A DNA stretch of 64,000 bases. Origin: Epithemia pelagica. Lineage: Eukaryota; Protista; Bacillariophyta. Shown here piece after piece: positions 1,300-49,900 of this stretch (position 1 is its first letter; each line of letters begins with the position of its first letter). The DNA lies in assembly GCA_946965045.2 (NCBI GenBank), contig OX337229.1:2170001-2234000 (forward strand), in the 5' to 3' direction. Made by a program: the position numbers and the translations under genes. The notes beneath the pieces are model-generated. The model searched no databases, was not told the DNA's origin, and was given only the letters and a program-made list of their open reading frames with translations.

Positions 1300-2351
1300 G
1301 GAGCTGGGGTAATCCTGAGCAGCTCGCTGTCATTCCAGGCAAAGTCTGACTACAAAGCGGAACACGACCAGAACGCTTAATCGATGTACTATAGCATAAA
1401 CTATGAACATGGACAAATAGAGAACTAATAGAAAGATTTAGGCCCACCACCACCCGGTTTTTGCAACCGCCCCAAATCATACTACATTAATTTACAGACG
1501 CACCATCTTGTGCTTCATGCCGCCTTCAAATTGTGCGTCCGGCTCATGTAGGGAAATCAACAACGCTCTGAATCCGTTTGTTGTGTCGTACATAAATTCG
1601 TAGTCGAACCTGCTTTGGACCATGAAAGGAAGAGAAAGAGAAAACTTTGACCTGACAAAGTCTGTTTCTCTTTTTAGCATCTGATTCATGGCGTCTTCCA
1701 AAGCAAGTTTCATTCGTAGGTTTTTCTCCTCGACATGCCACTCTCTGTGCATGTGTTGGGTTAGATAATGGATATGAGTTGCGTTGTCAGGCCAAATTAC
1801 CTTCACATGTACCTGTAGCTGGCTCGGATCCACTTCAATCAAGCAATTTGTTGTGTCTTCATGTGCAATACCTGTAGGCAACACCACCAAAATCACCAAA
1901 TGACGCTGTTTCTTGTCGTCGACCCACTGTGTCAAGACATGAGGAGGCTCCCAATTCCTCATCATGTCATTACCACTGTCTTCTTCATTCGTCTTTTTCC
2001 TCTTTTGTTGTAGTTGTACCTGTAGTGTCTCCTGTAATGGCATGGATCCTGCCGCCCTTTTCTTCACCATAGCATCGTCACTGACAACAGACTCAGGAGC
2101 GACCTTGGCAGCAACACCTGGTCATAAAAGACAATAAACCACAACAGGTAAGGACAGTGACTCAACAATCAAACAAACTGTGTACACTGGCACTTACCTT
2201 GTCCTTTGGACGACCCAAACAAAGAAGGAGCTGGTTTGAGATCTCCATCATTGGGGTTCCTTACCTTTCCATCCATAGATGGGGCCGTCTCACCACGACC
2301 CAACAACTCATGACCAGTCTCTCTCTCATGTTGATCCTTCAAGTGGACTTG
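1300..2351 (-). mobile_element. Truncated copy of the PHIS/Harbinger element (one TIR, ORF2 exon 2, intron, part of exon 1)
   Basis: CTG then GGAGCTGGGGTAATCC at 1297-1315; same as 13280-14331; cut at the hAT end. Confidence 0.9.
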
Positions 2352-2899
2352 TGAATTACAAATTACCCATTTTAGCACAATTCCAAGAATTATAATAAAA
2401 TTACCCTAACATCACCATTTCATCTTATCTTCCACAATCCCCATCGCATTTGAATAAATTACCTAATTATCTTCCATATGTTTCCCACCATAGAGCAAAT
2501 TACTATATTCAATTCTAGTATCCTAGCTCCATGTAATTGAGACCCTTATTCCATTCCCCCCCTCTCACGATCCATATAATTAGTCCCCAATTACACATCA
2601 TACCCCCCATTGAATTATCAAATCACTCCCTATCCACATGTATTACTGTAATTAGGTCGAATAATAATGAACTTCTATAGAGTTTTCTTTGCTCATTCGT
2701 TACAACAACAGATGAGGAATGGTGAATGAAAGAACACACCATGTACCATGCACCTCCACCACCACCACTCATTTGCGTTTGTGCAGATCTGCAGATCCGT
2801 TTCTCTCCCTCTCTTCAACAACACTCAGACTCTTTTTCCCCTCCATCGTCATACTTCTTTCTATTTGTCGCAAGTTATTATTGATACACCTATTGCAAC

Positions 2900-5800
2900 A
2901 TGGCTCCCCCTTCATTACCAAAGAAGAAACCCAAACCACCACCGAAGAAGAAACAGTCCTCCAGCACCAAGAAGAAAAGCGCTCCCAACAAAAAGAAGCC
3001 TTCTGCTTTAGAGGCTCAACAAGCTTTGATCGAGAAGGATTTTGGTGAGGATGTACAGGCAACCAAAGACGTGAACCAAATGGAGAAAGATGTTCTCCCT
3101 GTGTACCCAAACATTCCTACTCTCTTTTTTGATACCAAATCCTCTTCACAATATTGGGATTGGTCAATTCATATCAACTGGATTGAATTCGAGAAACTCG
3201 TCTCAAACAATAGAGAAGAGCTCGAGTCTTCTTTATACCCCGGATACCACAAAATAATCAAACTCTTCGATTCCTTAGTTGTCATCGATGAAGAGAAGAC
3301 CAAGACTTTGTCGCCTCCTGATCTGAGAGACAAGTTTTGGAAAATGTCCCGACGTGTTCTCATCTGTCCTAGATGTTTCAAGAACAAGTCACAACCACTA
3401 TGTGATTCGGTTATGGTCTGTTCACACGACAAGGCCTCTAACATCTACCAACACATCAAGGGCCATCACAAAGATCTCTATGACACTATACAGGCTGGTG
3501 GAAGTATATTGGGGTCGAATCCGAAACCCCCACCGTCCAACCAAAAGACGCTATCAGGATTCAAAGCGCCAGTCCAACCACGCAAACAAGCCACCAAAGA
3601 ACTCCATCGCCTCATGTATGAGTTCATCAATGACTGTTGTCTTCCAGCAGTAACAGTCGAGAAGCCCCAGTTCCGTGCTTTGTTGAAATATGCCTTTGAC
3701 AACGGTACCCAGTTAAAAGACTCTCGAGCTGAAGCCATGAGCCGACGGGAAATCACTCAGATACGGGTATCGTCGTACCAGGAGTTCATTGATGTTGTTT
3801 CCGATCTTGCACGAAAAGTCCGAGCGGAATACCGTCGCCTTTGTCAACATGAAATCCCATTCGCCACAGTGTGCCACGACATTTGGCAAGCACGGAAACA
3901 CGACGTGCTGGGAGTAACTATCATGTTATGCGACCCACGCAACTGCGTCATCTATCGCATACCAATCGGTCTGGCAGAAACACAAGGACATGCTGCTGTT
4001 GACGTTGCTGCCCTAACGCATTCTCTTCTTAAAGCCGTGGGATTTCGTCCATCTGACCTTTGCGCTACAGTGAACGATAATACTTCCGCAGCAGTGCTAG
4101 CGGGAAAGTACATTGTTGGAGAGCATGCCAGTAAGGGCAAATGTGACATGCACCGTGCAGAATTGGTGCTCAAGCATGCTACTGGTTTGATTCAGCGTTA
4201 TCAAAACAAGACTTTGATCGATTCCTTTCCAGCATTTGTCGACGCTTGGCAGGTTGCTAAGGAGTTTGCTTCGTACCTCTGTTCCAGAAAAGCATATCAC
4301 CGATTCGAAAAATTCAAGTCTGTTGTCTCATCTCTTGGTTGGGTTGTTGTGTCCATCCCACTCCCCAACGATACTCGAGTGGGCGGCTGTGTGTTATCCA
4401 TGGAGACGCTTCTCCGCATACTGTATCCAATGAAGGAGTATGCCTCTAAAGCCGTTGAGTCGGATCCTCACTTTATTACCCTCTTCAACAAGATCGACTG
4501 GACATTGATCTCGCAGTTTGAAGGAATTCTCCATCCGCTTCGTGGAGTCTTGCTATCATTGCAAACTGATGACCCAGGTTCTGGATCGGCTTCCCTCTTG
4601 GAAATCTATACATGTCGATTCCTTATTAAACACATGCGAACAGGTATTGTTGGTTGTCTTCCTACCAATCTAAACTATGGTCAACAGTGGGACGCCAGCA
4701 TCACCATGAAGGAGCTCGATGAAAAAAAAAGGAAAAAGGTCAAGTTTGAGAAACTCGAGAAAGGACCTCGAGACCTAATCCGTCGCATACTCAAGGAATA
4801 CGATTCATACTTAACCAACAAGGACGAAGACGGTCTCAAGGCCATGTGTGCCAACCCCCTACTTGTGAATGTGTATGAAGAACATCTCGTCGAATTAGGA
4901 GCCTACAATGAAGATGAAGTAAAAGAAATAAGGCGGCTTTTTATCAAAGACATGGTGAAACAATTCACAAACAAGAAAGTCTCACAAATTGGTGCTTTGA
5001 TTGCCAAACAAGGAAACATGGCAGTGTCGAACAAGAACACCGCTACCGATACTACAAGTACGGCTCGTACGGCTCATGCAACGGCTTCCAACGCGACCAC
5101 GGGCGGGAAAGCCACTGCAAACGACGATTCCGATTCCGATTCTGATACCTATGTTCCACTCAATCCATTTGAGAAAATTCGAAGATCGAGGGAGTTGAAA
5201 AAACAGGCACGACTACAATTGAGTGGGACGGCTGTAATGGGCGGTCAAGAAGCAGAAATCGTTGCGGCATTGCGGAAAGTATGCACTGAAGCATTCGACG
5301 AATACCGTTCCATGTGTTCGAAGAAGGTGGAACATCAGTGGGATACTGTTATACAGAATTATCCCACAAAGCAGTTGGATAAAGATTCAGAGAAGTGGAC
5401 AGACGATGAGACAAACGAGTTCCTCCAATACTGTTCGGAACACAACTTCCTGAAGGTTGGCAAATACTTTGACGTGATGAAATGGTGGGATGATAACAAA
5501 GGTGATTATCCCTATGTCTTTGTAAGCGCAATCATCTGGCTCACTAAGCCCGCTACAAACGCCTTCCAGGAACGCATCTTCTCTTTGGGAACGTGGTTTT
5601 CACAAAATAAGCTGATGTCTAATCTCTTGAAAAAACATTTCGAAATGAGGACCATGGACTGCCTAACAAGGGAGCTGAGACGAGAAATCCAGCAACGGGA
5701 ATCCGAATTGGAAGCTGCAAAGAGGAACAAGACAAAAGGCTCCACTCTGTCCAAGTATGTTGATAAGCGTCGTCTAGAAAGTGAGAAAGGTGATGGTACT

Positions 5801-6937
5801 GCTGACAAAGAGATTGAAGTTGAGGAAAAAGCAGATGAGACCTTGAATGAAGAAAGTATCTCTCAACAAAAGACGGCCGTTAGGACAAAGTCCATTCAAA
5901 CTGCCACTGAAGGTTTTAAGAAATATGTTCGAGCGGCAAAGTTCCCTGAGTCTGGTCCAATCTCCAAGGTTTCCGAAGATCCAACGTTAGAGATGACGTA
6001 TTATCCACTGTCGGATGACGACGAGCCAGATGGGAAACAAAGAGCCACTGCTAGTGGAAAGAAAGGACAGAGATCACCTACAACAGAGGAAGCCGATGGC
6101 AAACCACCGGCAATCAACAAGAAAGCAAACAATGAACAACCGGCAAAACCTAAGCAGTGGAACAGAGTCGTTTACACACAAGTCAGTGGTAAGCCGACAT
6201 TAGATGACGCGGACTCAGTCATCTATTCCTTAGGAACTGCTGAAAGTATGGATGAAGACAGTGACTGCGCTATGAATCAAGTTGTCCGTGACATAGTCAA
6301 AAATCCCGAACAGGTTGTTGTACTTGAGTCACTTGCAGGAAATTCTGACGAGATTCCCTTAGAAGTTGAGGTAGTGAATGAGTCAAAGGGGGGAGAGAAG
6401 AGAAAGACAGTCAGTTCGGATTCCAAACAATCTCGGAAGAAGCAAAAGGCAAAACAAACTACCATGACTGTAGCGGTACGGACATCGCCACCGAGGCGTG
6501 CAAAAGAAAAGTCACGCAATACACCCCCATCGGCTAAGCTAGTGCGTTCGGATGCAGCCAAAGGAAGTGGAAGTAAGAACAAAGCAAAAAAAACACGTGG
6601 AAAGTCAAAAGAAATCACCCAGTCAAAAGAAGACGCCCATAGTGTGGTCGAGGAAAACACACCCGGTGATCCACATAACGATCATGGAACGGATAAAGAC
6701 AACAACGATTCCGAAGACGACGAAGAGAGAAATGAAGATGGGCATGAAGGGGTGGATGTAGAAGAGATCAATGGCGACGAAGGTGATGAATGTGATAGTA
6801 ACAACAAGAATGATGTAGGAGAATCTATGGAGGAGCAGGAAGAAGACTTTGCCGTTGATGAGGGTGATGAGTGTGACGAGAGTGATGAGGAGGGTGATGA
6901 GGAGGGTGATGTGGAGGGTGACGATGATAACGAGTAA
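2900..6937 (+). CDS. hAT transposase, 1345 aa, intact
   Basis: BED-like CPRC...HIKGHH; VCHDIW (D), VNDNT (D), KCDMH (CxxH), PNDTRV, PATNAFQERIFS (E, dimerisation region); long acidic tail. Confidence 0.92.
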   Translation: MAPPSLPKKKPKPPPKKKQSSSTKKKSAPNKKKPSALEAQQALIEKDFGEDVQATKDVNQMEKDVLPVYPNIPTLFFDTKSSSQYWDWSIHINWIEFEKLVSNNREELESSLYPGYHKIIKLFDSLVVIDEEKTKTLSPPDLRDKFWKMSRRVLICPRCFKNKSQPLCDSVMVCSHDKASNIYQHIKGHHKDLYDTIQAGGSILGSNPKPPPSNQKTLSGFKAPVQPRKQATKELHRLMYEFINDCCLPAVTVEKPQFRALLKYAFDNGTQLKDSRAEAMSRREITQIRVSSYQEFIDVVSDLARKVRAEYRRLCQHEIPFATVCHDIWQARKHDVLGVTIMLCDPRNCVIYRIPIGLAETQGHAAVDVAALTHSLLKAVGFRPSDLCATVNDNTSAAVLAGKYIVGEHASKGKCDMHRAELVLKHATGLIQRYQNKTLIDSFPAFVDAWQVAKEFASYLCSRKAYHRFEKFKSVVSSLGWVVVSIPLPNDTRVGGCVLSMETLLRILYPMKEYASKAVESDPHFITLFNKIDWTLISQFEGILHPLRGVLLSLQTDDPGSGSASLLEIYTCRFLIKHMRTGIVGCLPTNLNYGQQWDASITMKELDEKKRKKVKFEKLEKGPRDLIRRILKEYDSYLTNKDEDGLKAMCANPLLVNVYEEHLVELGAYNEDEVKEIRRLFIKDMVKQFTNKKVSQIGALIAKQGNMAVSNKNTATDTTSTARTAHATASNATTGGKATANDDSDSDSDTYVPLNPFEKIRRSRELKKQARLQLSGTAVMGGQEAEIVAALRKVCTEAFDEYRSMCSKKVEHQWDTVIQNYPTKQLDKDSEKWTDDETNEFLQYCSEHNFLKVGKYFDVMKWWDDNKGDYPYVFVSAIIWLTKPATNAFQERIFSLGTWFSQNKLMSNLLKKHFEMRTMDCLTRELRREIQQRESELEAAKRNKTKGSTLSKYVDKRRLESEKGDGTADKEIEVEEKADETLNEESISQQKTAVRTKSIQTATEGFKKYVRAAKFPESGPISKVSEDPTLEMTYYPLSDDDEPDGKQRATASGKKGQRSPTTEEADGKPPAINKKANNEQPAKPKQWNRVVYTQVSGKPTLDDADSVIYSLGTAESMDEDSDCAMNQVVRDIVKNPEQVVVLESLAGNSDEIPLEVEVVNESKGGEKRKTVSSDSKQSRKKQKAKQTTMTVAVRTSPPRRAKEKSRNTPPSAKLVRSDAAKGSGSKNKAKKTRGKSKEITQSKEDAHSVVEENTPGDPHNDHGTDKDNNDSEDDEERNEDGHEGVDVEEINGDEGDECDSNNKNDVGESMEEQEEDFAVDEGDECDESDEEGDEEGDVEGDDDNE

Positions 6938-6991
6938 AATTGTAGGAGACCTACGAAAAACACATTACATGATACATGATTAGTTTACTAT

Positions 6992-8815
6992 CTATAATCG
7001 TTTATAACTACCGTATTTTCGAACGAGTTGTTGGACTCTGTCTTTTAATTCGTCACTCATTTCGGATTCGGCAATGATGGATTGCAGCTTGTGTCTATTC
7101 TCCGACACTGCACTTTGACTCAATGATCCAAACATTGGGTTAATAGACGACCAGTCAGCGGGATGAACCCATGATTCAAGATACTTGGATGTTAAATATC
7201 CACCTGTATCCTTCGGTACCCAACCCAAAAATTGGGTCCATCTGATCACGTGAATATCAGAAGGAATACCATCCGATCGACCAAATGATGACTCGACAAT
7301 AATCGCGGCGGTTTTGTATCCAATACCAGTGAGGGTAGACACTTCTTCGATCGTGATGTTGGAAGGAATTCGCCCACCATAATGCTTCATAAAGTAGTTT
7401 GCTGCATTAATTATTCGTTCGGTGTTCTGGTAATACCGACCCGGTTCCGAGAACATGGAGCAGATTGCATCAGGTCCGAATTGATCGCTGGCATCGATCA
7501 CAGCTCTTGAAGACGTGATCCCAAAAGAAAATATACGTGGCATGACTCGGCTAAGTTGAGAATCCGAAGTGCTCGATGACATACAGATAGTCATGAGGAA
7601 CATGAAGGCCCTGTCTGCCTGTCGGTCATCTTTTCGAATTGATGCGTCAATCCATTCTTCCCAATTGTCTCTTGGGGAGATTATTCCCATGGACTTGGCC
7701 TTTTCGTGGACAGACAACAGAGCAATAAGGTCGAACTTCCAAATCAAAGTCTGAATGGGACAGAAAATAGGAAGGTATGGAGGTTTGTCAAATACTTTTT
7801 TTAGCATTGGTGGGTCGTGAGGCATAATGCGGCGCTTTTCCTTTGTGCAATATTGGATTGTTTTTTTGGATCGCGACAACGATTTGAGAAAGTTGGACAT
7901 TTCTTGATTTCGGGCACGAGTTGGATATAAGTGATAAGCCTGTCGATGGATGGGGTGTGCTTTTCTGGGTGAATGTGAAGGAGATTTCCGCTTCAACAGT
8001 GTCTGATTTGGAGAATCTGATGGAGTATCGGTGGGAGTGTTAGATTCAGACGTTGGATCAGTGGTAATACAAGTTTCTGGAGACTCGGCGACTGCTTTTT
8101 GGGATGGTTTTGTAAGCAGGTTGGAATATTCATCCCTGATACATCGCAGGTACGGTGAAATGTTTCTTGGTATATACACAGAACATGATGATTTGGATAA
8201 AGAAGAACATGGTTCTAGGAAACAGTCGGTGGTCATCTTCTGTGGTGATTGCTTGCAATATATAGTTGTGTCTGTGGATAATATCCACGAAAGAGCCATT
8301 GACTGAATGGAAGATTGTAGTGGTTGTTCGTTTGCTTGCTCTTGTTCGATGGAGGAAAAGCATTCAAGGGACTGTTGATTGTGTACGAGTTTGAAATGTG
8401 GTTTGCAATGAACATGAAGGATGATTGTTGTACTACCAGGGGGTTGATCAACAAAATGGAAGTGTTGATGTTGCCAGGGACTGGAAACTTCTGTAGTATT
8501 GTAGTCTTCCAATATGGTTTGGAGAACGATTGCTGAAATCAATTCAACTTGCGCAGAAAATGAAAGCAGATCTACTCGGCAGTCATGAGAGGCAGATCCA
8601 GTGGTATTGTGGGTTTGGTAGGAGATATGACCGTCCACTGAGAGTAGCCAATTGATTGTTGCTTGTTCAATGGATTTCAGCATCTCAATTCTGGATGAGG
8701 TACTTGTTGTTGTACCAACGTTGGACCAGATGGCAAATAACTCCAAGTTGCAATGCATGATGTACATTGGTCTGCAGAAAGATTGGAATTGAAGTGATGG
8801 AAGTTCCTTGTTCAT
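6992..8815 (-). CDS. Endonuclease III-like HhH-GPD DNA glycosylase, 607 aa, with unknown N-terminal half
   Basis: FMFLMTICMSSSTSD, YGGRIPS..IEEVSTLTGIGYKTAAII (HhH with Lys), GIPSDIHVIRW (Asp); no C-terminal 4Fe-4S Cys cluster. Confidence 0.88.
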   Translation of the reverse strand: MNKELPSLQFQSFCRPMYIMHCNLELFAIWSNVGTTTSTSSRIEMLKSIEQATINWLLSVDGHISYQTHNTTGSASHDCRVDLLSFSAQVELISAIVLQTILEDYNTTEVSSPWQHQHFHFVDQPPGSTTIILHVHCKPHFKLVHNQQSLECFSSIEQEQANEQPLQSSIQSMALSWILSTDTTIYCKQSPQKMTTDCFLEPCSSLSKSSCSVYIPRNISPYLRCIRDEYSNLLTKPSQKAVAESPETCITTDPTSESNTPTDTPSDSPNQTLLKRKSPSHSPRKAHPIHRQAYHLYPTRARNQEMSNFLKSLSRSKKTIQYCTKEKRRIMPHDPPMLKKVFDKPPYLPIFCPIQTLIWKFDLIALLSVHEKAKSMGIISPRDNWEEWIDASIRKDDRQADRAFMFLMTICMSSSTSDSQLSRVMPRIFSFGITSSRAVIDASDQFGPDAICSMFSEPGRYYQNTERIINAANYFMKHYGGRIPSNITIEEVSTLTGIGYKTAAIIVESSFGRSDGIPSDIHVIRWTQFLGWVPKDTGGYLTSKYLESWVHPADWSSINPMFGSLSQSAVSENRHKLQSIIAESEMSDELKDRVQQLVRKYGSYKRL

Positions 8816-9611
8816 TATTGGTTATTGTGAAGAAGTCAACAGGACAAGCTGTAGAGGTACAACGAACAACGAATGAACACAGAACACATGACCTCTGGGA
8901 GCACGAATTCTGAGCACAGAGTACTGAGCACTACGCACTAATCAACACTGTGAACTGCATGGAAGCGTAAAAAAATATGATAATTTGGTAATTAATTGGG
9001 TAATAGAATGGAAATTTATTCAATTACTCATTGGTGTGGTAATTTAATAAATCTTAAAAATGAATTCTAGGTGGTGCGTTGAATATTGTTATTGAAACGG
9101 ACTAATTCCAAGGCAAAGTGTGTGAGAAGGAAATTATGGTAATTTTTATAAATTAATTCAAACGGACAAGGAATTGGGAAAATTACAATAATTCAATTCA
9201 AAGACAATTGAGTGGATTTGTTAATTCAATAATTATATTCTAAATTATATTAGGGCTAAATTAATTTTGATATTAAATTAAAGAGAGAAAACAAGGAGTA
9301 ATAAATTATAAAATTCCATTATTAAGTGATTGTGCGGTAATTCACAACCCTGATTCGCTTGCGGACGGTTGTCCACAACTCGCTTCTAGCCGCTCTTTGG
9401 TCGTCGATCGACTGGGACTCCTCGTCCTGATCCAACAATTGGACCGCTTCGCGGTAAAGAGTCGACTAAGTTCAGTATCTGTTATCTGTGCAGTGGAATC
9501 CGTGACTGAACGAACCAGAAGTACTGAAATATGTAGACTACTTAGGAGTGAGAATAAAGAGAGACGGTGCAACTGAACTTGCTCTGTACTCCTGGGAGTA
9601 GTTATGGAATT

Positions 9612-10413
9612 CTAGTATCCACAGGTTTCGGAATGTGAAAATGTTGTCACTTATATTCCACGCCATACGATATCTGATGATGCAATGCAATTTGGGTGCG
9701 GCAACTTTGATGGTATAGTTGTTCCTGTTCGACTTGAGGCTATTGTACTACAAGATTTGTCGCCATTTGTTTCGCGTGAGAACAACTCTAGTATCCAAAG
9801 GTTTTGGAATGTGAAACTGTTGTCACTTATAGTCCACGCCATAAGGTATCTGATAATGCAATGCAATTTGGGTTCGGCAACTTTGATGGTATACTTGTTC
9901 CTGTTCGACTTGAGGCTATTGTACTACAAGATTTGTCGCCATTTGTTTCGAGTGAGAACAACTCTAGTATCCACAGGTTTTGGAATGTGAAAATGTTGTC
10001 ACTTATAGTCCACGCCATAAGGTATCTGATAATGCAATGCAATTTGGGTGCGGCAACTTTGATGGTATACTTGTTCCTGTTCGACTTGAGGCTATTGTAC
10101 TATAAGATTTGTCGCCATTTGTTTCGCGTGAGAACAACTCTAGTATCCAAAGGTTTTGGAATGTGAAACTGTTGTCACTTATAGTCCACGCCATAAGGTA
10201 TCTGATGATGCAATGCAATTTGGGTTCGGCAACTTTGATGGTATACTTGTTCCTGTTCGACTTGAGGCTATTGTACTACAAGATTTGTCGCCATTTGTTT
10301 CGTGTGAGAACAACTCTAGTATCCAAAGGTTTTGGAATGTGAAACTGTTGTCACTTATAGTCCATGCCATAAGGCATCTGATAATGCAATGCAATTTGGG
10401 TGCGGCAACTTTG
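9612..10413. repeat. Tandem array, 176-bp unit x ~4.55
   Basis: CTAGTATCCA starts at 9612, 9788, 9964, 10140, 10316; units differ by scattered substitutions. Confidence 0.97.
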
Positions 10414-10864
10414 TGTTAGAATTCTCACCGTCTATGGTGGTTAGATTCTACATCTCATCGATTCCCCATGTCACATAGCCTCGTGCTATCGCATCATGCC
10501 ATCTAGCTTCGAGCTATGTTCCCTAGCTTCGCGCTATATCGACCTATATTTCTTCACAAATCATGAAAAGTGAGAATAGATTGACGAACTCACTCTCAAG
10601 ACTAAACTGGGTCGTGCGGTATTACAACGGACGTAAATTTGGCCGTTGCTCGGACATTATACTAACGCCCTAAGCGTACGCGCCCAAAATCATCGAGCGT
10701 GCCCAAGCGACATCCGAGCGCTGTCGGCATCTATCCGACCCAACGGTCTAAGTATCCCAAGCACGACACACGATCACGCAAGACCATATTTCCATTCCCA
10801 CAATCTCCAAATTGTCAACAAGCTGCGCGCCATGAAAACAACTATGCCAATCCAAAGCAAGAGC
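10414..10864 (+). mobile_element. Decayed copia LTR/leader fragment
   Basis: Starts TGTTAG; GATTGACGAACTCA at 10579-10592 matches 10/14 of the PBS of the other two copia elements; followed by CAAGACTAAAC, similar to CAAGACTTAAAC in the copia leader near 18185. Confidence 0.4.
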
Positions 10865-11421
10865 TGTTGACCCTGTATATGTTATCCGTCCACATATACA
10901 TGTCATATACATCACATGAATCGACTCCAACTATTCCAAACCTGTTGCCGCCAAGAACCCTACCCCCAAGCAGGGGTGAGTCCAGGTCGCACATAGGTCG
11001 TACCTAAAGGTACATCTGTATACTCACCCCCTTGGCTCGACCACCCAAAATTGGCGGTTTTCCGACATTGATACAAATTGCATTTTACCTCAACGCATCC
11101 ACCACGGTGCCAAACTAATGAGGTCGATTGCATCCGCCGTGAAGGCTGTCCAACCGCACCCAAGCCCTTGTAAGCTTTCCCATCCTACCGACGACACTTC
11201 TGCCTACTCGGTGTTGCCTTCAATTGTTCTTTCACGAGCATGGACAACCAGCAAAACACCACATTTCGCGACAACAACGAGGGAGATGAAGATCCATCAA
11301 CCGACTTCCCAAACCGCTCTATTACGTCCCTTCCGCCATCTCATTCTCTCCCCATAATACCGAGCGGCCTTCCAAAGGTCCAGACCTTCTGCACCAGGCA
11401 CGAACCGGAACAACCATAAAC

Positions 11422-11450
11422 CAAGACAAGACAAGACAAGACAAGACAAG
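11422..11450 (+). repeat. (CAAGA)n microsatellite, ~6 units
   Basis: Read directly. Confidence 0.9.
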
Positions 11451-11658
11451 GATGGAAGGTTGTGGTTGTCTCCATTGATAGTGCCATCTGATACAGCTTT
11501 TATCTCTTCTGTCTGTGTGTCTCCTCGGTGAACGAAAGATAGCTTGAATCTTTCCTTTTGTTTCGTGATCTGAAATTGGTGCAGCGGCGGTCATCTCGTC
11601 ATTGGACACGCTTTCCCAACAACACCATGTCTTCCTTTCGTTCGGCCTCAATTCCCAG

Positions 11659-12295
11659 TGTCGATCGCGGCAAACAATCGATTGAAACCATTTGTTTGCT
11701 CTTGGCCTACAAGATCCAATATCCACTCAACTTTTTTATACTACGAGGCAATCACGAAAGTGCCGGTATCAATCGCATTTATGGATTTTACGACGAATGC
11801 AAACGGCGGTATTCCATCAAATTGTGGAAAGTCTTTTCCGATGTCTTTAATTGTCTGCCCGCCGCCGCTGTGATTGACGAACGAATCTTGTGCATGCATG
11901 GCGGGTTGTCTCCTCAATTGCAAGAATTGGACCAGATCGCCGACCTTGAACGACCCTGCGATGTTCCCGATTCCGGATTGTTGTGTGATTTGTTGTGGAG
12001 TGATCCCGATGCTCCCAATTATTGTGGCGAATTTGACAATGCCGGCGGCATGATTACCATTGCACACGATTTAACCTGTTCCTTTCAAATCCTCAAACCC
12101 AGTCATTCTCGTCACAACCCATCTCTGGCTGCAGCAACCACTGCAACATCGCGAGGAGAAGGAACGCGACGTCCAAATCCCAGAGAGCATAAAAAGGACT
12201 CCACCAAGACCACTCCGACAAGCAGTAGCAGTGTCGAACCATCCTCCGTGTCCAGTCGAACCATGGGCAGTGGTCTTCTTCGCAGCACCTTTTGA
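11659..12295 (+). pseudogene. PP1: Ser/Thr protein phosphatase 1 catalytic-subunit fragment, 5'-truncated and internally deleted
   Basis: [65 protein letters not shown]; GDIHG exon absent; putative acceptor TTCCCAG at 11652-11658. Confidence 0.92.
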
Positions 12296-12439
12296 GCACA
12301 TTTACTTTAGGGGCGAGGGCTTTGTTTTGCATCCCCACCATTGGAGCAAGGTTATCGTGTCCCTGGAAAGCTTTGTCGAGAGATGAAATTCATGGTTCAT
12401 CCTGCGTCGAAAGCATCCCAGCTTGCGGTCGAAAAGGTT

Positions 12440-12800
12440 TCTGGGCGACCAGTTGGTGGTGGGCATCGAAGTGAATCCACCCCCTTGTGCGACCGTGCAC
12501 TAGTGTCGGAAACGGGCAACTGCCCTTATTGCACAGACCGACAAGAAATTTGTATCCTGCTGGAGTAGAAACTCCACGGTTTGTGCCGTGGTGGATGGAC
12601 CTTTCGGTCCATTAGCAGCGATCATAATTTCTAATTTAAGCTCTGGGACCCTTTCGTAGTATTCTCCACGCCCAACTGCTCCGTATTTCGTTGCGAAAAG
12701 GAATGCTTTGTATGCTTGATGCGACTTGGACTCCACTCGATGGTGAGATTGTCGTTCTCGATAGTGTTGCCAAGGCACCCACTCCGGAAGGCTCACTCCA
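12440..12800 (-). pseudogene. Possible degenerate ankyrin-like gene fragment
   Basis: TVEFLLQQDTNFLSVC then, after a frameshift, GQLPV; weak resemblance only. Confidence 0.25.
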
Positions 12801-13471
12801 AGTCGGAAGCACCACCATTCAGTGATCTTGATCTCCTACGAGCATAAACTCCCTTGTCTTTTTGGAGAGGGAAACAACACATTCAAAATGATTGGAAGAA
12901 GCGATCATTCATTCCTATCGTGCCCTTAAAAGAATTGAAGGATGGCACCCAGTACCACCAGGCCACCGGACAACCAGGCATAGTATTGTTTCCATTGGAT
13001 GGCTTCTTGTTGCTGTTCTTGGACTTGTCGCATTTCTTGTAATGTTTGTTGTAATTGTTGTTGCAAGTTCTCTCGTTCTTGTTTGGCTTGTTCATTCCCC
13101 TGCAATACTTGTTGCTGTAACTGCCCTCGTTCCACCCGACCGGCTTCCTGGGCGTTTCGTATTTCGTCTTGCAAGGCTTGCTTTTCCTGGTTCAGTCGAT
13201 GTTGTTGTTGTTGATACTGTTTCAATTGTTCGGATTGTTGTTGTTGTAATTGCGCTCGTTCTGTCCGACTTGTTTCCTGGGAGCTGGGGTAATCCTGAGC
13301 AGCTCGCTGTCATTCCAGGCAAAGTCTGACTACAAAGCGGAACACGACCAGAACGCTTAATCGATGTACTATAGCATAAACTATGAACATGGACAAATAG
13401 AGAACTAATAGAAAGATTTAGGCCCACCACCACCCGGTTTTTGCAACCGCCCCAAATCATACTACATTAAT

Positions 13472-14616
13472 TTACAGACGCACCATCTTGTGCTTCATGC
13501 CGCCTTCAAATTGTGCGTCCGGCTCATGTAGGGAAATCAACAACGCTCTGAATCCGTTTGTTGTGTCGTACATAAATTCGTAGTCGAACCTGCTTTGGAC
13601 CATGAAAGGAAGAGAAAGAGAAAACTTTGACCTGACAAAGTCTGTTTCTCTTTTTAGCATCTGATTCATGGCGTCTTCCAAAGCAAGTTTCATTCGTAGG
13701 TTTTTCTCCTCGACATGCCACTCTCTGTGCATGTGTTGGGTTAGATAATGGATATGAGTTGCGTTGTCAGGCCAAATTACCTTCACATGTACCTGTAGCT
13801 GGCTCGGATCCACTTCAATCAAGCAATTTGTTGTGTCTTCATGTGCAATACCTGTAGGCAACACCACCAAAATCACCAAATGACGCTGTTTCTTGTCGTC
13901 GACCCACTGTGTCAAGACATGAGGAGGCTCCCAATTCCTCATCATGTCATTACCACTGTCTTCTTCATTCGTCTTTTTCCTCTTTTGTTGTAGTTGTACC
14001 TGTAGTGTCTCCTGTAATGGCATGGATCCTGCCGCCCTTTTCTTCACCATAGCATCGTCACTGACAACAGACTCAGGAGCGACCTTGGCAGCAACACCTG
14101 GTCATAAAAGACAATAAACCACAACAGGTAAGGACAGTGACTCAACAATCAAACAAACTGTGTACACTGGCACTTACCTTGTCCTTTGGACGACCCAAAC
14201 AAAGAAGGAGCTGGTTTGAGATCTCCATCATTGGGGTTCCTTACCTTTCCATCCATAGATGGGGCCGTCTCACCACGACCCAACAACTCATGACCAGTCT
14301 CTCTCTCATGTTGATCCTTCAAGTGGACTTGGTATTTTCTTTTGGCTTTGTTGAGTGCCGACCTGAATGATTCCAATTTGTACTTTTGGAAAACAGCGTG
14401 TTCCAACCACACAGATTTGGGTGTGGCGCTCTCCAGAATCAAGCCTTCTGACACGATTTTGTCAAGGAATTCGGCATCTGTTGACTTTGAATTCCACGAA
14501 AGTAGGGCACCCTCGCCCAAACTGTTGCGGCCAGACCTGGTCATCGGAGTATAGGTACTATTAGTACGTAAAACAGAAGCGCGAGGGAGTGCGAAACCAG
14601 ACTGGTCTGTTCGCAC
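13472..14616 (-). CDS. PHIS accessory ORF2, two exons (14616-14178, 14097-13472), ~330-354 aa; helical DNA-binding-like N-terminus plus HSP20/alpha-crystallin-like C-terminus
   Basis: 80-nt GTAAGT...CAG intron (14177-14098, phase 1) joins the 155-aa and 192-aa ORFs in frame; the domain calls are by pattern only. Confidence 0.75.
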
Positions 14617-14737
14617 GAAAACTAATTATGACCCTAAAAACAGTTCACCAAAATCCGGACTGGGTCGGTTTTCATCATGGACTCCATTTTTCAATCGAGG
14701 AGGCCATGCCTAATTTGGCTCCAATTCTGAAAGTAGT

Positions 14738-14960
14738 GCGACCCACGTATTGCCCTTACCTTGGGTCAACCGTGGGTCGTTCGTCCAAGTGAATTGGGCA
14801 CTTATAAGGTGTCCTGGGTCGGTTTTAAAAAAACGAGCTGGGTCGATTTTTTCGAGCCAGGTAGTTTTTTCAAAACCGACCCAGGACACTTTCTAGTGGT
14901 TCAAATGATATAATCAAGCGACCCACAGTTAACCCAAGATAAGGGCAATATGTGGGTCGC
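14738..14960. promoter_or_regulatory. Nested palindrome between the divergent PHIS genes
   Basis: 43-bp arms 14738-14780 / 14918-14960 (5 mismatches); perfect 18-bp inner IR 14809-14826 / 14872-14889; repeated GGGTCG. Function inferred from position only. Confidence 0.6.
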
Positions 14961-15300
14961 TTAAGATGTAGAAAGTAATAGGATGTTGGCGAGGTAGGGC
15001 CATTCAGAAATTCCAGTTTTTGAATGAAAACGATTTTTGAATCGATTTCTGCACCGTTCCAGGCCGGTTCCAATGACCGGACACGAATTCGAATTGGTCA
15101 CTATATGTAGAACAGTACAAAGTTTAGTGTCGCTGCTCAACTGACCAGCCAATCAAATGAACGTGATGAAATTCCAAAAAACCTGTTCCAATGAACTGAC
15201 AGTACTACACACAGACAGACCGAGATCAAAGTAAAGGTGTGGTCAGCATCGCGACACACACTGAGCAAACATAAATTTTCCAAAGCGGTTTTCTCCCACC

Positions 15301-16239
15301 ATGTTGGTGACACAACGAACATTCATCAACTTGGCTCTGCCAATGCTTGGTAGAGCAAGACACTCACACACACTTGATTTCTCACGTGCTTTTCGTTCTT
15401 ACTTTGGAATGTCTCCTTTGCTCTGTGTTCATGTGTGGGATGAACTGGACAGTTCATTGCCCAAAGGTGCATCGCCTCGTCATTTGTTGTGGACACTGGC
15501 TTTTCTGAAAGTCTATGCTACAGAGGATGTTATGGTCTCAATAGCCAAAACAACGAGGAAGACCTACAGGAAGTGGGTCAAAGTGTTTGTAAATTTGTTG
15601 TATAGTGGTCTTAATTATGTAAGTACATGGCCCTACATGAATTTGCCATGAAGTCGTCCTCCTCATATCTGACCATTGCTGTTGTTCTTATAACAGGTTG
15701 TATGGGACAATAGGTTTGATTGTTGTGTACCTGGACAGGTCTGTTTCATTAGTTTGGATGGTACTGACTTCAGGATTTTGGAGCCGTCACCTTTTGATCC
15801 AAAATGGTACTCGCACAAGTTTAAGGGAGCAGGTGTGAGGTATGAGGTGGGAATCTGCCTGAAAACTGGCTGGATAGTGTGGTGGAATGGTGCATTCCCT
15901 TGTGGCGCTTGGCCAGACCTACGGATTGCCAGAGACTGGCTTGTTCAAGAGCTACTACCGAATGAGAAAGTGATTGCTGATGGTGGTTACAACGATTCTG
16001 GATGCTACTTTGTCACACCTACTGGAAGAAATGACTATCAAGACAAGATGATGGCTGATGCCAGGGCGAGACATGAAACTGTCAACAATTTACTGAAACA
16101 TTACAATATCTTAAAGGAGAAATACAGAGGAGATCTGGATGGGCATCACAAGGTGTTTGGAGCAGTGGTGAATCTGGTTCAGATGAAGATTGAAAATGGT
16201 GAGGCGAAAGTGTTTCAGATCGAAGTGGAAGATGACTAG
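15301..16239 (+). CDS. PHIS/Harbinger DDE transposase, two exons (15301-15618, 15697-16239)
   Basis: 78-nt GTAAGT...CAG phase-0 intron; HLLWTLAFLK helix region; LDGTD, IADGGY, RARHETVN (D-D-E). Confidence 0.92.
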
Positions 16240-17330
16240 CAGTACAAATATGTAGCGGTTATGAACCGGGTGGTGGTGGGTTTTAATAGTACTAGCAGTC
16301 AGTATATCATCTTTTGTCGCTAGAGTGTTCTTTATACAGAAAAAGCGTTCGGTAACTCCTATAGGTCACAGTCAGTATCTGACTGGTAAGGTAGCGACCT
16401 GCTCAGGATTACCCCATCTCCCTGAGCCTTTCGCATTTCCTCTTGCAAGTTTTGCTTTTCTAGAACGAGTAGCGCTTGTTGCTGTCGATGCTGTTCCAAT
16501 TGATCCGAAACTTGTTGTTGCAATTTCGTTCGTTCCGTCTGACCGGTTTCCCGAACCGTTTGCATTTCGTCGTGCAAGCCTTTCTTTTCCTGAACCAGTC
16601 GTTCCTACCTGACAAGATTGCTTGAGTGTTGTTGTTGTGCCTGTCGGTTTGCCAAAGGAGTTTCGTAGGAGAAATTCGCAACTATAGCATCAATACCACC
16701 TGCGGCAACGGAGGAAGGAGGGCGAAACAACGTGATACCGGGGGTTGAGGAGGAATGGGCCTGGGATGTAGGAGTGTTGTTGGTTTTGGCGATGCCAGTA
16801 TCAAAACCTGCTCTTGCAGATGCCACCGGCTGACTTGGGTCCACCTGAGCTTCATAGGCTTGTCGGGTTTGCTTCTGAGAAAGCTTCCGACGTTTATGTC
16901 AAGAAGAAGACATGATGTAGGTCGATTTGATACCTCTGCACCTCCACCACCGTAATGGATGCGTGGAGGTAGAATGAAATTTGTATCAATGTCGAGAGCG
17001 ACCAGGTCGAGCCAAGGGGGTGAGTATACGGATGCACATCGTGCATCCAATCACGCGTGACTGACTCACCCCTGCTTGGGGGTACCAAGAACCTATGACA
17101 CATGACCCTTGGCAGGACCGAACATTTCACGTAGACCTATCGTAGTAATCAACACACAATCTAACAATATCACCATTTATCACATCTTCTTTTGTGTCCC
17201 GACTATCCTTTTGATAGACTACGATTTGCTTGCTTCTCTGACCCTGAGAAGCTTGTATCGGTTGGTGACCTACCTGATTGTCTGCTCTACCGAGCATCAA
17301 TGTCCCTACGATTCAGAAAGAATTGTAACA

Positions 17331-20917: not shown

Positions 20918-20967
20918 TGCAATCTCTGAAGCAAATCTCATTATATATTGACTAGTATCTTTCTTAT

Positions 20968-26321: not shown

Positions 26322-30272
<3,951 letters not shown>

Positions 30273-33012: not shown

Positions 33013-33412
33013 ATTCTGGTGATTAACAGGCCGAGGTATTCATCGACAGTAAGCAGTAGATTATTGATAGACTTTGACTAAGTTTTCTTGCTTGTCATAT
33101 GTGTTCTATACACACTGGTATACAGATGAACTTAACATCTGAGTTCCATATGATTCGTCGGTGACATCAACAATCAACAATCATTGTAAGCAAACAATAG
33201 GCATGTGACAAAGAAATGATTGGATTAGATCCAATCTTATGACGTAATAATGTAGAGGAGGTGAGGTACATGACGTCCGTCTATTCAGTGTCTGGTACTC
33301 CTAGCAAAAATAGAGGCTAGTAATACGAATTGATTGGCGGGTTGATGAAGATACTAACAGCGACTGATTAACGAGCGGAGGCAACTTTGCTCTTTTGTGT
33401 GATGTCATATTC

Positions 33413-44430: not shown

Positions 44431-44695
44431 CCAACACTGGTGGCACCAACAGAGTAGGAATCTCCAAAATTTAGGTACAAATAGTAAAATGAGGGGTTTC
44501 TGACTGCTTCTCGGTAAGGCCGGCATATCCCATTAGACGTCCACAAAATACTGGACAGACGCACAGACTAATCCCGAACTCTAATACATCTCGTGTGTGA
44601 CACGTGTAGATCTAGGCTGGCTTGACCTGAGTGATCAACCGTCACAAGTTGAAGGCTTGAGCATTAGATCGTTGTACTCCCAAGATTCTTTTTTC

Positions 44696-45818
44696 ATGAA
44701 AAACTCACCCACGAAACGCAGCAGAACAGAGCAAGACAATAAGGCCACCCATCTTTCTTCAGTCATCCATTGTTTCAAATCTAAGAAAAGTTCCTCACAA
44801 CGGACACAGGCTGCCTTGTGTATATTGGAGGCTGGTGGTAAACCACCTCCTTCCTCATCTAAGCGTTTCAGACGACATCAAAACAAACGAAGGAAGGAAA
44901 AAAAAGATTCAAAATCTCTTCCAAGTTCCAGATGTGCCAAGCTCCTTCAAATGGAAGAAATCGACGTTGGAAAAGAAAATGATTGCCTTCCATGATGAAC
45001 ATTTGGCAGATGACACGAAGAACAAAGGCTCCAATAATCAACCATTCTTTTCCCCACTTGCAGAATTGGTTACAACGGATGTGGGAAGGGCCGGAGCCAT
45101 ATTTCAAACGGACGATTTAACACTGCCTGTTTATGTCAAGACGCCTATGAGTGAAATGACAACACCACTTATCCAGAAGAAGATCCTGTGCATATTTGAG
45201 AAATTTGAGGATGAATACAAGACTCCCCAACAAAGAGGTCAATCCCGCTGCATCGGATTGGAGTCCCACAACTTGTCATATATCACAATTGGTAAACATG
45301 CCAATCGTGGAGGAAAAGGCATCGTCAATTTGAAAATGAAACTTCTACATTGGTGAGAAAAGGAAACCCTGATTCGGTTTGTACGACAAGTGGAAGAATG
45401 CTTCTGTCAATGGGTCGACTCCTCCTTTTTAATTGGCTTTTCCATGATAAAGGCAATCCAGGAAATCGAAAGTCTCTCTTTTGAAGGCAAAGAATCAACC
45501 TTTTTCTCTTCCATTGCTTTTGGAAAGAATGTTTTCCTTCCAGCCCATACAGACAACGATTTCTTTTATTCTGTTGTCATGGCACTCGCGAGAGAGCCCG
45601 AGAAGACAGGTGACGACATCCTATGCTACTTTGTTTTCCCAGAGCATGGGCAGAAAGTTCCAATGAGAAATCTTGACTTTCTCATATTCAATCCACAAGT
45701 GTACCATTGTGTTTCGAAAAGGGTAACCCACGACAATGTTTATTGTGCCTCATTTTACATCAAAACTGCAGTCGTTGGGAAGAACGACCTTGAACAATGT
45801 ATCTGTAATAACTATTAG
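44696..45818 (+). pseudogene. TET/JBP-like 2OG-Fe(II) dioxygenase
   Basis: AHTDNDFFYS (HxD), YFVFPEHG...DFLIFNPQVYHCVSKR (H), SFYIK; one frameshift (~44900-44990) and an in-frame TGA at 45354. Confidence 0.62.
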
Positions 45819-45915
45819 AACTAGTATCTAACACTATCGTTTCATAGGGCAACCAATATCTCCTAGTGAGCGTTTAGTAACTGGGGAGCATGTTTTCTCA
45901 TATATTATGTTGTTC

Positions 45916-48900
45916 TCAATCAAACTGCGTAAGTCCCAGTTTTGCTCCACGGAATCTTCGACAGTGACGGGAATGCTCCGAATTTGATGAAACCCATTCT
46001 TGGCCATGATTATGGTTACTTCTTTGTGCCATGTCCTTGCGAATAGATCTTGTAAGTTCACATATGCTGGCAACTGGCTTCATCAAATCCACTGCGTTGT
46101 TATTATAGTTTGCTGAACAAAACATCTTCTTAAGGTCAGTGATTTCTTCCATCATTAATTTGATAAATGAGCTTGGTACCAGAGTCTCTCCGTATTCTTC
46201 ATCGCATTTCTCGTGAACATTATTGTCGAAAACATCACTGGACGTTTCATCAACTACAAGGTCAGCAGATATTTCATCATTGTTTATCTTGTTTCTGTTT
46301 TGACTGTCATCATCATTAGGATAAGGATTGTCAACAACACCAGGAATAGTTGGCATTGAAGTACCATACCGAGGACCAATATCCTCAGGAGCTACAAAAG
46401 ATTCTTGTGTTAGAGTTTCATGATTCGCCATTTCAATAGGATTCTCTGGTAGCAAGAATTCTTGAAACGTATCTCCGGCTCTCTTGATTTGTTCATCGGA
46501 ATAGTTCATGCACTGTTTTTGTCGTTCTTCTATCCAATCCGGAATATGACCTGTCTCCGGACAGTAGCTCCACAACTCCTTCTCATTCCACAACCTGCCT
46601 GTTTGTATAGGGAATTTGGGGCCACTGATGTCATTGGTCAAAAGCTCTTTTAACATGTCGTTCACCGTATTGTCAGTACTTTCATTTGTTGATCGAAAAG
46701 CAAAGAAAATATACTTTTCCACCAAACCACACTCACATCATGGTGTGAGAATCCGTTATACTCGTTGCACTCAAAACTCAAGACTGCCGCTTGATGAGAA
46801 TATGGATATCCACATCGCTGGAACGTCGAACAAGGCACAGCAGTCTACCAGTCTCATCCAGTGTGACCGTCTGTGTTCGATGCCAAACAGGATAGAGGCG
46901 TTTCCTTTCTGTTTCCAAAACTGTCTGTTCCACATTGACCACATCCCATGACCATGGAGACTGTGGTTGTCGTCGTATGGCATATTTGATCCTGTTGTCC
47001 CAAGCCTTATTCACTATATCATGGCACAATTCAGTTACCATTCCATTTAAAGGAAGTCCCGTCTGCTTCATCCAAACAGATTTTGATTCCACTCGACTGG
47101 CCGCTAGTCTGATCTGAGAGTTGATAGTGACATCTGATTGGAACTTCCCGTCTGCTTCATCCAAACAGATTTCGATTCCACTCGACTGGCCGCTAGTCTT
47201 ATCTGAGAGTTGATAGTGACATCTGATTGGAACTTCCCGTCTGCTTCATCCAAACAGATTTCGATTCCACTCGACTGGCCGCTAGTCTGATCTGAGAGTT
47301 GATAGTGACATCTGATTGGAACTTCCCGTCTGCTTCATCCAAACAGATTTCGATTCCACTCGACTGGCCGCTAGTCTTATCTGAGAGTTGATAGTGACAT
47401 CTGATTGGAACTTCAATATGGCAGCATCAGCTTGCACAGTTCCACCCGGAACAACTGCAGCAGAATGTTCCTTCATACCACAATTTGTCCCTTCAGGACT
47501 GCTGTTTGTACATTCATCATAATGTCAAAGATTCTTACGGTAACAATGGACAAGATGTCGGTCATGTATAAAAACATATCCTGTTAGGAAACGTAGAATT
47601 TTCCATTTCTGGAATGAATATAGGCCAGTAGTAATGACTTTGATGTAATCAATTCGTCTTGAGTCTCGCAATACCTGCGGTACATGAAAGTATAACACCA
47701 CTGTTTGACAGTGTACCCAAAGAGTTTGTACTCCCGACTATAGTTTGTATCAATTGCATTACCAAAAGAGCAATGCCGTGACCAACCTTTATGGATGATG
47801 TGCCATCCACATCAAAGACGAACACAATTTGGCATGAACCGTCTACAAGCTTCTTCAACTTCGGTGATTTCATGCGAATCTCCATCAGTGATTATCGCTT
47901 TTATCTCATTAACCCATTCCCCACTAAGAAGCTTTGGCAAAGCCCAGGAGAAAACCCATCGAAATGTCGCTTGTTTTTGATCACGCAAGAACATTTGCAG
48001 TATAATGATGTATTTTCCAAAGGATGTGCGAATTGAGGCCGTTAGAAGAGGTCTAGATTCCTTGTTGGTTCCTTCAGTAACATCCATCTTGAGAACATGA
48101 GGAAATAAGCGGAACATACGCTTCTCCTTGTTTGTGATCCAAGCACATGCGATGAAGAAATTTTGGTCTGGTTGGATTTCCAATGTATCCATATCTGTGG
48201 AGTATTCATCAAGAATTTCTGCACAAAAGGCAGTCATGTCAGTGACATCTCGTTTCCCATCATCATATTGGTTCTCACTGAATATCATACCAGCTTGACG
48301 CTGGAGTCTTGCATTTATTAGGTTCCCCCCCCCCCAAAATACAGTAACTCAATTCAGGAGTTGACCGTAACCATTCCACCACAGCTTCTGCACCGACTTT
48401 AATTCCCTTGTAGTGATATTTAGATTCTGATGCCATAGTACAAAATGCCCACCACGTTTGCTCGGGTGTGAGTGTAATGTCATGAATCGCGTGGAAGAAG
48501 TTGCATCCCAAAGCAGGTCCAGTGTTTGCCTTGCCAAGCTCAGCTGCCCTTTTGCGCTGTTCACGTGTTAGATGTCGAAGTTTGGTTAGAATGTCTGTTG
48601 CCATCCGTTTGAAATGGTTACAATGTGTTAATGACCCTGAGCTACATTTTAATATATCGATGTAGATGTCAAATCGGAATGAGCATGTATCTTCGTTTTT
48701 GAGTGCGCGATTCGTAACAACCTTCCGTGGACCCTTTTTCCCATCAATTCCCCTGCTGTTGCCTCTTTTGTCATTGTGTAACGAGATGTTCCGGTGTTCC
48801 ACTTCAATGCTATTCCCTGGAGGCTGTTTACGCTTCTTGTTGTACCGTCAGTAGCGGTCACACATGAATGTTCTTGACATGTATGGAGGTTCACTTCCCA

Positions 48901-49900
48901 TTGGAAAAGCCTTACGATTAGCCAATGACTTCTTGTTTGTGTTACCATTCATTACAATAGAAAAACCATTCGCAATGGCAGCTCTGGAAATACAGGCTCG
49001 TAACATTGAAAAAGACCCTTGTTCATCAAAAACAGTGCTGGGGTTGGTACAAGGAGGCAATTCATTTCTGTTGAAATATGCGTAGTAGCCTTTGATGTGG
49101 TCTGCTTGAGGGAGCCATCCAATGAACGCGCAAATGTCGACGTCCATTGTTGTCGCAGTTGAAATACAGTCATCTCCAGTGTGCATTGGGAATGTCATAG
49201 GTGAGACCCATTCTGTTTCTAAGGAGTTAAAGTATCGGTCCAATTCATATTGAATTCTGTCATGAAGATTTGTATAATCGTTACTGATCGTTCGAAGTGT
49301 CGTTGATTTTTTTTGCTCATTTAATTTTTTGACGTATAATTGGAGTACTTTCATTTCTTTAATCAAATTTAGGACAATAGTAGAAGCGTCCTTGATGGTA
49401 GCAGACATGTCCATAGTATTATTTGTTTCCCTTGTTGCTTCCAATCGTGATCTGTTAGGAATCTTATGGACTTCCAGAATATGTGTCTCACTGGTAACCT
49501 GTTCAGAATTCTCCAGTTCTTGGTTGTCTGAAACGTTTCGAGGGCAAGTGATGACAGTAGCTTCCTGACCGACGGGCTCACCTACTGGGTCCCGGTAGGA
49601 CTCAATTTCTGGACTGGTATTAAATGTGGGTGGATCGGTGTTAATGAATGAATTTGATTGGACAAAGGTTTTGTAAAATGTGTTTCCTTGAAGTACTTGT
49701 GCCACTTCTTCGACATCACTTGGTACACGCAAATTAACCGGTAAGAAAGAAACTTTCTGACCGTCCATGATTTGACCCTTGACACGTCCTTTCTTCTTAT
49801 TGGGAACGGGAACACGAGTGACCCACCCAACGTGGTCCTTGTGTAAAAGTGATGGTAGCAAACTGACCAACCCTCCATTTGGAATTACGGGGCAAATCAA
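45916..49900 (-). pseudogene. MULE (Mutator) transposase with SWIM finger, decayed
   Basis: MDVTEGTNKESRP, IITDGD, L*CGWH, LLC/CSTFQRCGYPYSH (SWIM, frameshifted); several stops and a repeat expansion. Confidence 0.88.
47058..47413. repeat. 89-bp unit x4 inside the MULE ORF, ABAB variant order
   Basis: Starts 47058, 47147, 47236, 47325; CTGATC / CTTATC alternate. Confidence 0.95.

Follow-up and report, generated by a model that had tools for sequence, protein, structure and literature searches.

We analysed a 64,000-nucleotide stretch of the genome of the diatom Epithemia pelagica (contig OX337229.1, positions 2,170,001 to 2,234,000 of the forward strand; contig ctg1343l, ~665539-729538, of ENA assembly ERZ21939226), hereafter the window. 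We read it, with a probability of roughly 70%, as a transposon island in which three unrelated, multi-copy families of two-gene DNA transposons landed independently and left copies that are now mostly dead, with an accessory gene in each whose product would act on the chromatin or DNA of its own element. The three families pair a hAT transposase with an endonuclease III-like glycosylase, a 'RAG1-like' transposase with a protein of BAH fold, and a Mutator-like element (MULE) transposase with a TET/JBP-fold 2-oxoglutarate (2OG) dioxygenase (Table 1). In all three, transposase and accessory gene are convergent and lie 34-107 bp apart. The hAT and 'RAG1-like' cargo genes sit inside elements bounded by terminal inverted repeats (TIRs), with target site duplications (TSDs) in the case of hAT, and in both of these families sequence comparison indicates that cargo and transposase have diverged in parallel under purifying selection.

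A preliminary description of the window had proposed a single counter-defence system of four gene pairs, these three and a DOT1-like methyltransferase with an oxygenase, assembled by repeated capture of chromatin and DNA erasers and writers directed against host DNA methylation. Linkage of transposase and partner was found again at other loci for three of the pairs (four loci for hAT, three for 'RAG1-like', and locus L013 for MULE and TET/JBP). The idea of one system in 64 kb did not survive: the window holds a nest of independent insertions, two of the three transposon copies being dead, and the most fitting description of the cluster is a transposon graveyard, not a system. Because the families are multi-copy genome-wide, their co-occurrence in a transposon island is expected, and there is no evidence of the four pairs cooperating.

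The hAT element is the only transposon copy in the window whose genes are intact, both open reading frames (ORFs) being uninterrupted. Its description as a convergent hAT and glycosylase pair was confirmed: the ORFs end 54 bp apart, the transposase matches PF05699, and residues ~400-570 of the cargo protein align to human NTHL1 (PDB 7rds, E 3e-11) and to bacterial endonuclease III (E 2e-5). The N-terminal ~390 amino acids (aa) of the cargo correspond to no known fold, and the C-terminal ~200 aa form an endonuclease III/NTHL1-like HhH-GPD glycosylase/AP-lyase domain, which is the better conserved of the two parts and scores below threshold against Pfam HhH-GPD (17.7 bits vs. a cut-off of 26.2). 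In an alignment of five sequences, the catalytic lysine (GIGYKTA, K501) and aspartate (PSDIHV, D520) are invariant in all five.

The claim that this element is delimited by TIRs is half right for the window copy. The family TIR, defined from the L001 copy, is 16 bp long (CAGGGTTGTGAATTAC) and is complete on the right side at 9337-9352; the remnant on the left (TTGTGAATTAC, 2349-2359) lacks the terminal CAGGG, and no target duplication was found around the copy. AATTAC/GTAATT motifs are repeated near both of its ends. Two hAT-like 11-mers elsewhere in the window, at 34677 and 35430, were rejected as chance matches in which CAGGG is absent.

A word-index search recovered relatives of the glycosylase at four further loci (L001-L004), representing three subfamilies, and at every one of them the gene stands tail to tail with a hAT transposase at a distance of 54-107 bp. 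The L001 copy, 98% identical to that of the window, has 16-bp TIRs (CAGGGTTGTGAATTAC) and a perfect 8-bp target duplication (GTGTCGAT), in keeping with the short TIRs beginning with CAG and the 8-bp TSDs of the hAT superfamily. L003 and L004 are 6.8-kb copies that are 99.96% identical to each other, lie among ordinary host genes and are flanked by perfect TSDs (TTGTTCAC and ATTCAGGC); the glycosylase of their subfamily is ~40% identical to that of the window. Between hAT subfamilies, glycosylases share 42-43% and transposases 45-46% aa identity, with synonymous sites saturated and a proportion of nonsynonymous differences (pN) of 0.40. Between L002 and L003 the corresponding identities are 60% for the glycosylase and 74% for the transposase, and the ratio of nonsynonymous to synonymous rates (dN/dS) of the glycosylase is 0.19; for the transposase, the window copy compared with L001 gives a dN/dS of 0.30. 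Since cargo and transposase diverge in step, the glycosylase dN/dS is 0.19 and copies are bounded by TSDs, hAT plus glycosylase is an old family of autonomous two-gene elements, whose cargo these rates place under purifying selection rather than adrift. A second hAT transposase ORF in the window (27126-30272) is related to the first, and a search around it turned up neither a glycosylase remnant nor TIRs or a TSD.

In the second family, the window copy is a decayed fragment that keeps its 5′ terminus at 25397 and is cut on the other side within the partner gene, at 20479. An intact relative of its transposase (P0005) is 1282 aa long, and the longest ORF left in the window, with ten relatives in ERZ21939226, spans 891 aa (21298-23973). 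The tail of the transposase gene, at 20968-20971, is separated by 50 bp from a plus-strand ORF whose stop is at 20917. This 816-aa ORF (18467-20917) had been taken for the partner of unknown function, and comparison with the L005 locus marks it as a chimera, in which an unrelated ORF runs in frame into a remnant of the true partner gene. The breakpoint falls at 20478/20479, and the part upstream of it (18467-20478) has no similarity to the partner genes of L005-L007. The chimera serves as a warning that long ORFs in the window need not be genes.

What stands of the original pairing is the convergent family itself, which we find at three further loci (L005-L007; 97, 71 and 45% identity), each with a convergent ORF of 548-556 aa that ends 34-57 bp from the transposase stop. 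At L005, imperfect inverted ends (73% complementary) surround both genes; the ends of the element start with (C)ACATAGGCAGCAC. Partner identities of 64, 44 and 42% accompany transposase identities of 69, 46 and 46%, with synonymous sites saturated and pN of 0.25-0.43. Neutral evolution of the cargo is thus seen neither here nor in the hAT family, with its dN/dS of 0.19. We gathered 18 partner homologues and modelled the intact partner of L005 (predicted local distance difference test score, pLDDT, 77); a structure search with this model returned a BAH fold, and its residues 430-545 resemble a small Tudor/KOW-like barrel, with a weak Z score. As modelled, the partner is probably a chromatin reader and not an enzyme, and its casting as an eraser or writer fails on this point. 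A RAG2-like partner, which the layout, reminiscent of ProtoRAG, might suggest, was rejected: the fold search gave BAH plus a small barrel, and no kelch or PHD domain.

The RAG1 label could not be reproduced by sequence methods. Pfam was blank for the window ORF and nine relatives, and neither phmmer nor a nine-sequence profile found a RAG1 or Transib match in the PDB. Neighbours of the transposase in a protein language model include RAG1_RNase_H (0.86-0.88) and DUF1280 (0.92), which are leads only and leave the label unconfirmed; we keep it in quotation marks.

The third pair, MULE and TET/JBP-like, is convergent in the window with 97 bp between the ORF ends, as had been claimed, although frameshifts and stops have broken up the MULE and a TGA interrupts the TET-like gene. 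The C-terminal piece of the TET-like protein matches 790 clusters in an exhaustive HMMER search, and its iron triad (H226, D228, H284) is nearly invariant across 30 TET-like sequences. Searched by sequence, family profile included, the gene has no match in Pfam or the PDB. The structures closest to the modelled protein are TET/JBP members, which rank above other 2OG oxygenases; the predicted protein has the TET/JBP fold, an identity that the structure model alone settled. On another contig (L013), counterparts of window positions 44524-45724 (TET-like part) and 48695-49282 (5′ part of the MULE) adjoin directly; they are 95-98% identical to the window, and a Copia element has inserted there, an arrangement that identifies L013, from its sequence, as an internally deleted copy of one MULE-TET mobile unit. 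A TET/JBP-fold homologue, the modelled protein P0020, is encoded at L010, an 18-kb metagenome contig (ERZ925375 k127_475020), surrounded by short ORFs, one of them MazG-like.

The fourth pair did not hold together as described. The assignment of DOT1 is, as a prediction from sequence, solid (E 1.6e-16 in Pfam for 33395-34627). Its neighbour at 31523-32830 owes the 'oxygenase' label to an HxD...H pattern seen by eye only. This gene has three stops and no Pfam, PDB or Atlas match, and hhalign against the TET-like profile gives it a probability of 0.4%. Its first 132 bp are repeated at 63869-64000, so this unit has been locally duplicated. Neither DOT1 nor its neighbour is linked to a transposase or part of the elements described here. 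The stops in this gene and in the TET-like gene (TGA/TAG at 31889, 31919, 32204 and 45354) came without indels and left the frame intact, a pattern of point-mutation decay that deamination of methylated cytosines, or a process like repeat-induced point mutation (RIP), would be expected to leave.

Table 1. Positions of the transposon genes, their partners and associated features in the window (positions are those of the 64,000-nucleotide stretch).
Feature	Position	Strand	Remarks
hAT two-gene transposon copy, 7.0 kb	2349-9352	+	98% identical to L001 over exactly that span
hAT transposase, intact 1345-aa ORF	2900-6937	+	Pfam PF05699 Dimer_Tnp_hAT, 31.3 bits (cut-off 21.4)
hAT cargo, intact 607-aa ORF	6992-8815	-	Convergent, 54 bp from transposase ORF
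Truncated, decayed two-gene 'RAG1-like' transposon	20479-25397	-	98% identical to L005:9408-14338 (BLASTN)
'RAG1-like' transposase pseudogene	20968-24804	-	Three frames and an in-frame stop (TBLASTN of P0005)
Partner-gene remnant, last ~146 aa, small beta-barrel domain	20479-20917	+	BAH-like N-terminal domain missing here
Unrelated upstream ORF part	18467-20478	+	Protease-like DRGANGG motif; Gag/protease-like by eye only
TET/JBP-fold 2OG dioxygenase gene (fold as modelled)	44835-45818	+	Single frame, one TGA (45354-45356), motif AHTDND...H
Decayed MULE transposase region	45916-49900	-	Frameshifts, stops, 89-bp tandem array at 46968-47501
Terminal 269-aa ORF of MULE region	45916-46725	-	Relation unassigned
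MULE DDE domain	47812-48288	-	Pfam PF10551, 29.0 bits (cut-off 27.6); PF21056 ZSWIM RNaseH-like, E 2.9e-10
FAR1-like region, by eye only	48848-49900	-	
Second hAT transposase ORF, 1048 aa	27126-30272	-	PF05699, 28 bits; 36% identical to first hAT
'2OG-oxygenase-like' gene	31523-32830	+	One frame; stops TGA 31889, TAG 31919, TGA 32204
DOT1-like methyltransferase, intact 404-aa ORF	33413-34627	+	Pfam PF08123, 60.9 bits (cut-off 23), E 1.6e-16; S-adenosylmethionine (SAM) motif VDLGHGLG
100%-identity duplicated block, 2351 bp	1-2351 (= 11981-14331)	.	Copies 11980 bp apart, self-BLAST

In the mechanism that we propose, an inward promoter at each end of an element would drive the transposase and the accessory gene, as in maize MuDR, and the accessory proteins would target the chromatin or DNA of the very element that encodes them. 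Modified bases would be removed by the glycosylase and oxidised by the dioxygenase; the BAH reader would guide the element toward or away from marked nucleosomes, for targeting or protection. In either case the element would stay expressed or mobile. A counter-silencing role of the cargo is plausible; an action 'against host DNA methylation', as in the preliminary description, can only be inferred.

Several observations weigh against this reading. The inward promoters are an assumption, and the hAT element appeared in no RNA run in an expression check. All of the glycosylase relatives found derive from the single assembly ERZ21939226, and all partner homologues of the 'RAG1-like' family are ENA entries, apparently of one assembly. 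The four-cysteine [4Fe-4S] loop is absent from the hAT glycosylases: by translation and alignment, no cysteine follows the catalytic region in the window protein, P0001 or P0004, and a single one does in P0002 and in P0003. The predicted enzyme therefore lacks the iron-sulfur (Fe-S) cluster of EndoIII and DEMETER. For the MULE, where long TIRs and a 9-11-bp TSD would be expected around both genes, a search about window positions 44524-49900 gave no inverted ends, its linkage to the TET-like gene recurs at one other locus only (L013, where it is rearranged), and none of the 30 full-length TET-like members matches Pfam TET_JBP. Two distant TET-like homologues from other samples (L010 and L012) have no MULE nearby, and the L010 contig looks virus-like rather than like a transposon.

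Another reading, which we consider unlikely, is that the cargo serves the mechanics or repair of transposition, the glycosylase nicking or repairing donor or target DNA and the BAH protein tethering the transposase to nucleosomes, much as RAG2 guides RAG1. The conserved lysine and aspartate are those of a bifunctional glycosylase/lyase, the co-evolution of cargo and transposase is tight and their layout fixed, and, to judge by the titles of the matching PDB entries, nucleosomes are bound by BAH domains, all of which would fit such a role. However, hAT transposition elsewhere needs no glycosylase, and the related hAT at 27126-30272 is without one. 

The system originally proposed, in which all four pairs would work as a single counter-defence cluster at one site, with erasers and writers captured repeatedly to defeat host cytosine methylation, we regard as improbable. 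Three transposon families with cargo related to chromatin or DNA modification do lie within 64 kb, and a fungal precedent has been interpreted in the same way (PMC12730594), but two of the three transposon copies are dead or truncated, the 'RAG1-like' partner is probably a reader and no enzyme, and DOT1 and the '2OG' gene, whose assignment is unsupported, come without a transposase. Moreover, the pairs are unlinked to one another, and families that are multi-copy across the genome are expected to co-occur. Similarly doubtful is a reading in which the MULE-borne dioxygenase and the hAT-borne glycosylase would act in trans as a shared oxidise-then-excise demethylation pathway, with at least three unrelated superfamilies each having acquired and kept a gene that acts on DNA marks or chromatin; if true, it would amount to mobile, transposon-encoded demethylation outside plants, animals and fungi.

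Least credible, and in our view very improbable, is that the DNA-modifying cargo, instead of erasing silencing, marks DNA so as to silence it or to compete with other elements, for example by a dioxygenase making 5-hydroxymethyluracil (5hmU) from thymine: a dinoflagellate TET/JBP enzyme is reported to produce 5hmU with a role in transposable-element silencing (PMC11572971), and a structural match gives a fold and not a substrate, but a self-silencing gene would be hard to maintain under purifying selection in a selfish element, and fungal TET-bearing transposons have been read in the opposite sense (PMC12730594).

The tail-to-tail layout shared by the three families is a classic one for DNA transposons with two genes: two convergent genes lie between the TIRs both in maize MuDR (mudrA/mudrB) and in amphioxus ProtoRAG (RAG1L/RAG2L). 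Unlike in those elements, the cargo here is unrelated to mudrB and RAG2L, and the partner of the 'RAG1-like' transposase has a BAH fold, whereas RAG2 has kelch and PHD domains. The hAT glycosylase shares the HhH-GPD fold, and the catalytic lysine and aspartate of a bifunctional glycosylase/lyase, with endonuclease III/NTHL1 and with plant DEMETER/ROS1, in which the fold is able to excise 5-methylcytosine (5mC). It differs from all of these in lacking the Fe-S cluster, in its unique 390-aa N-terminal region and in being transposon-borne.

Transposon-borne counter-silencing cargo is already a published concept, for fungi, Phytophthora and Arabidopsis VANC. The association of TET genes with transposons was reportedly first noted, in Basidiomycota, by Iyer et al. 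in 2014. Fungal DNA transposons of ten or more lineages have captured TET/JBP genes, which is read as an escape from silencing by methylation (Kojima 2025, PMC12730594). As in the window, the fungal TET/JBP genes lie beside transposases of diverse superfamilies, with gene order and orientation conserved within families (PMC12730594); in contrast, MuDR/MULE is not among the fungal carriers, the host here is a diatom with a MULE as carrier, and the other families here carry a glycosylase or a BAH reader. VANC, the anti-silencing protein of Arabidopsis VANDAL (Mutator) elements (PMC5735166, PMC10398659), is likewise an accessory gene product of a Mutator-type element that counters silencing of its own family, but it is a sequence-specific DNA binder without a known catalytic fold, whereas the cargo here has enzyme folds or a histone-reader fold. 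Captured chromatin- or DNA-modifying genes are also recorded in protists, including stramenopiles, namely SET-type histone methyltransferases carried by Harbinger/MuDR elements of Phytophthora (cited in PMC12730594) and DNA methyltransferases (DNMTs) in retrotransposons (de Mendoza 2018, as cited in PMC9998398); these involve other enzyme classes and carriers, and the DOT1 gene of the window has no transposase linked to it.

Our literature search, of incomplete coverage, found no hAT-borne glycosylase, no MULE-borne TET/JBP gene and no diatom case. The suggestion that such an arms race had not been described therefore holds for diatoms, in the literature searched, and not for the concept itself (PMC12730594, PMC5735166). 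If the cargo does act on DNA marks or chromatin, this genome would join fungi as a second example, arisen independently, of numerous transposon lineages equipped against epigenetic silencing. It would add two types of cargo for which we found no description, the EndoIII-derived glycosylase of hAT elements and the BAH reader that neighbours a 'RAG1-like' transposase, and would provide testable material for the study of silencing and counter-silencing in diatoms, for which no demethylation pathway is known. The value lies in the pattern across families rather than in a single locus, and the window adds little beyond the family copies.

Around these elements, transposon remains are dense: two hAT transposase ORFs, a Copia reverse transcriptase, a PIF/Harbinger-type DDE ORF, the MULE and tandem arrays. 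The window had been described as lacking host genes; it is not entirely devoid of host-like sequence, one such piece being a PPP phosphatase fragment at 11558-12295. At the left edge, the right border of the duplicated block 1-2351 abuts the hAT element at its truncated left end, with 1-3 bp of common bases at the junction, and ~1300-2351 is a high-copy repeat (contig depth in the thousands). In contigs from public runs the duplicated block continues uninterrupted, and hAT left ends with CAGGG occur in different flanks; none of these contigs spans 2351/2352. The junction may be a genuine rearrangement or an assembly mis-join in the high-copy repeat.

Other repeats were noted in passing. At 11063-16994, 47-nt inverted repeats (89% complementary) enclose the PPP-type Ser/Thr phosphatase fragment at 11558-12295 (Metallophos, E 9e-23) and a PIF/Harbinger-type DDE_Tnp_4 ORF at 15754-16239, a unit that may represent the capture of a gene fragment. 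Tandem arrays occupy 9608-10435 (176-bp unit, about 4.7 copies) and, within the MULE remnant, 46968-47501 (89-bp unit, about 6 copies). Finally, a 950-aa ORF on the minus strand at 53153-56005 with a Copia-type reverse transcriptase (RVT_2, E 1e-16), alongside which further ORFs lie at 56155-58254, is a further retroelement of the transposon island.

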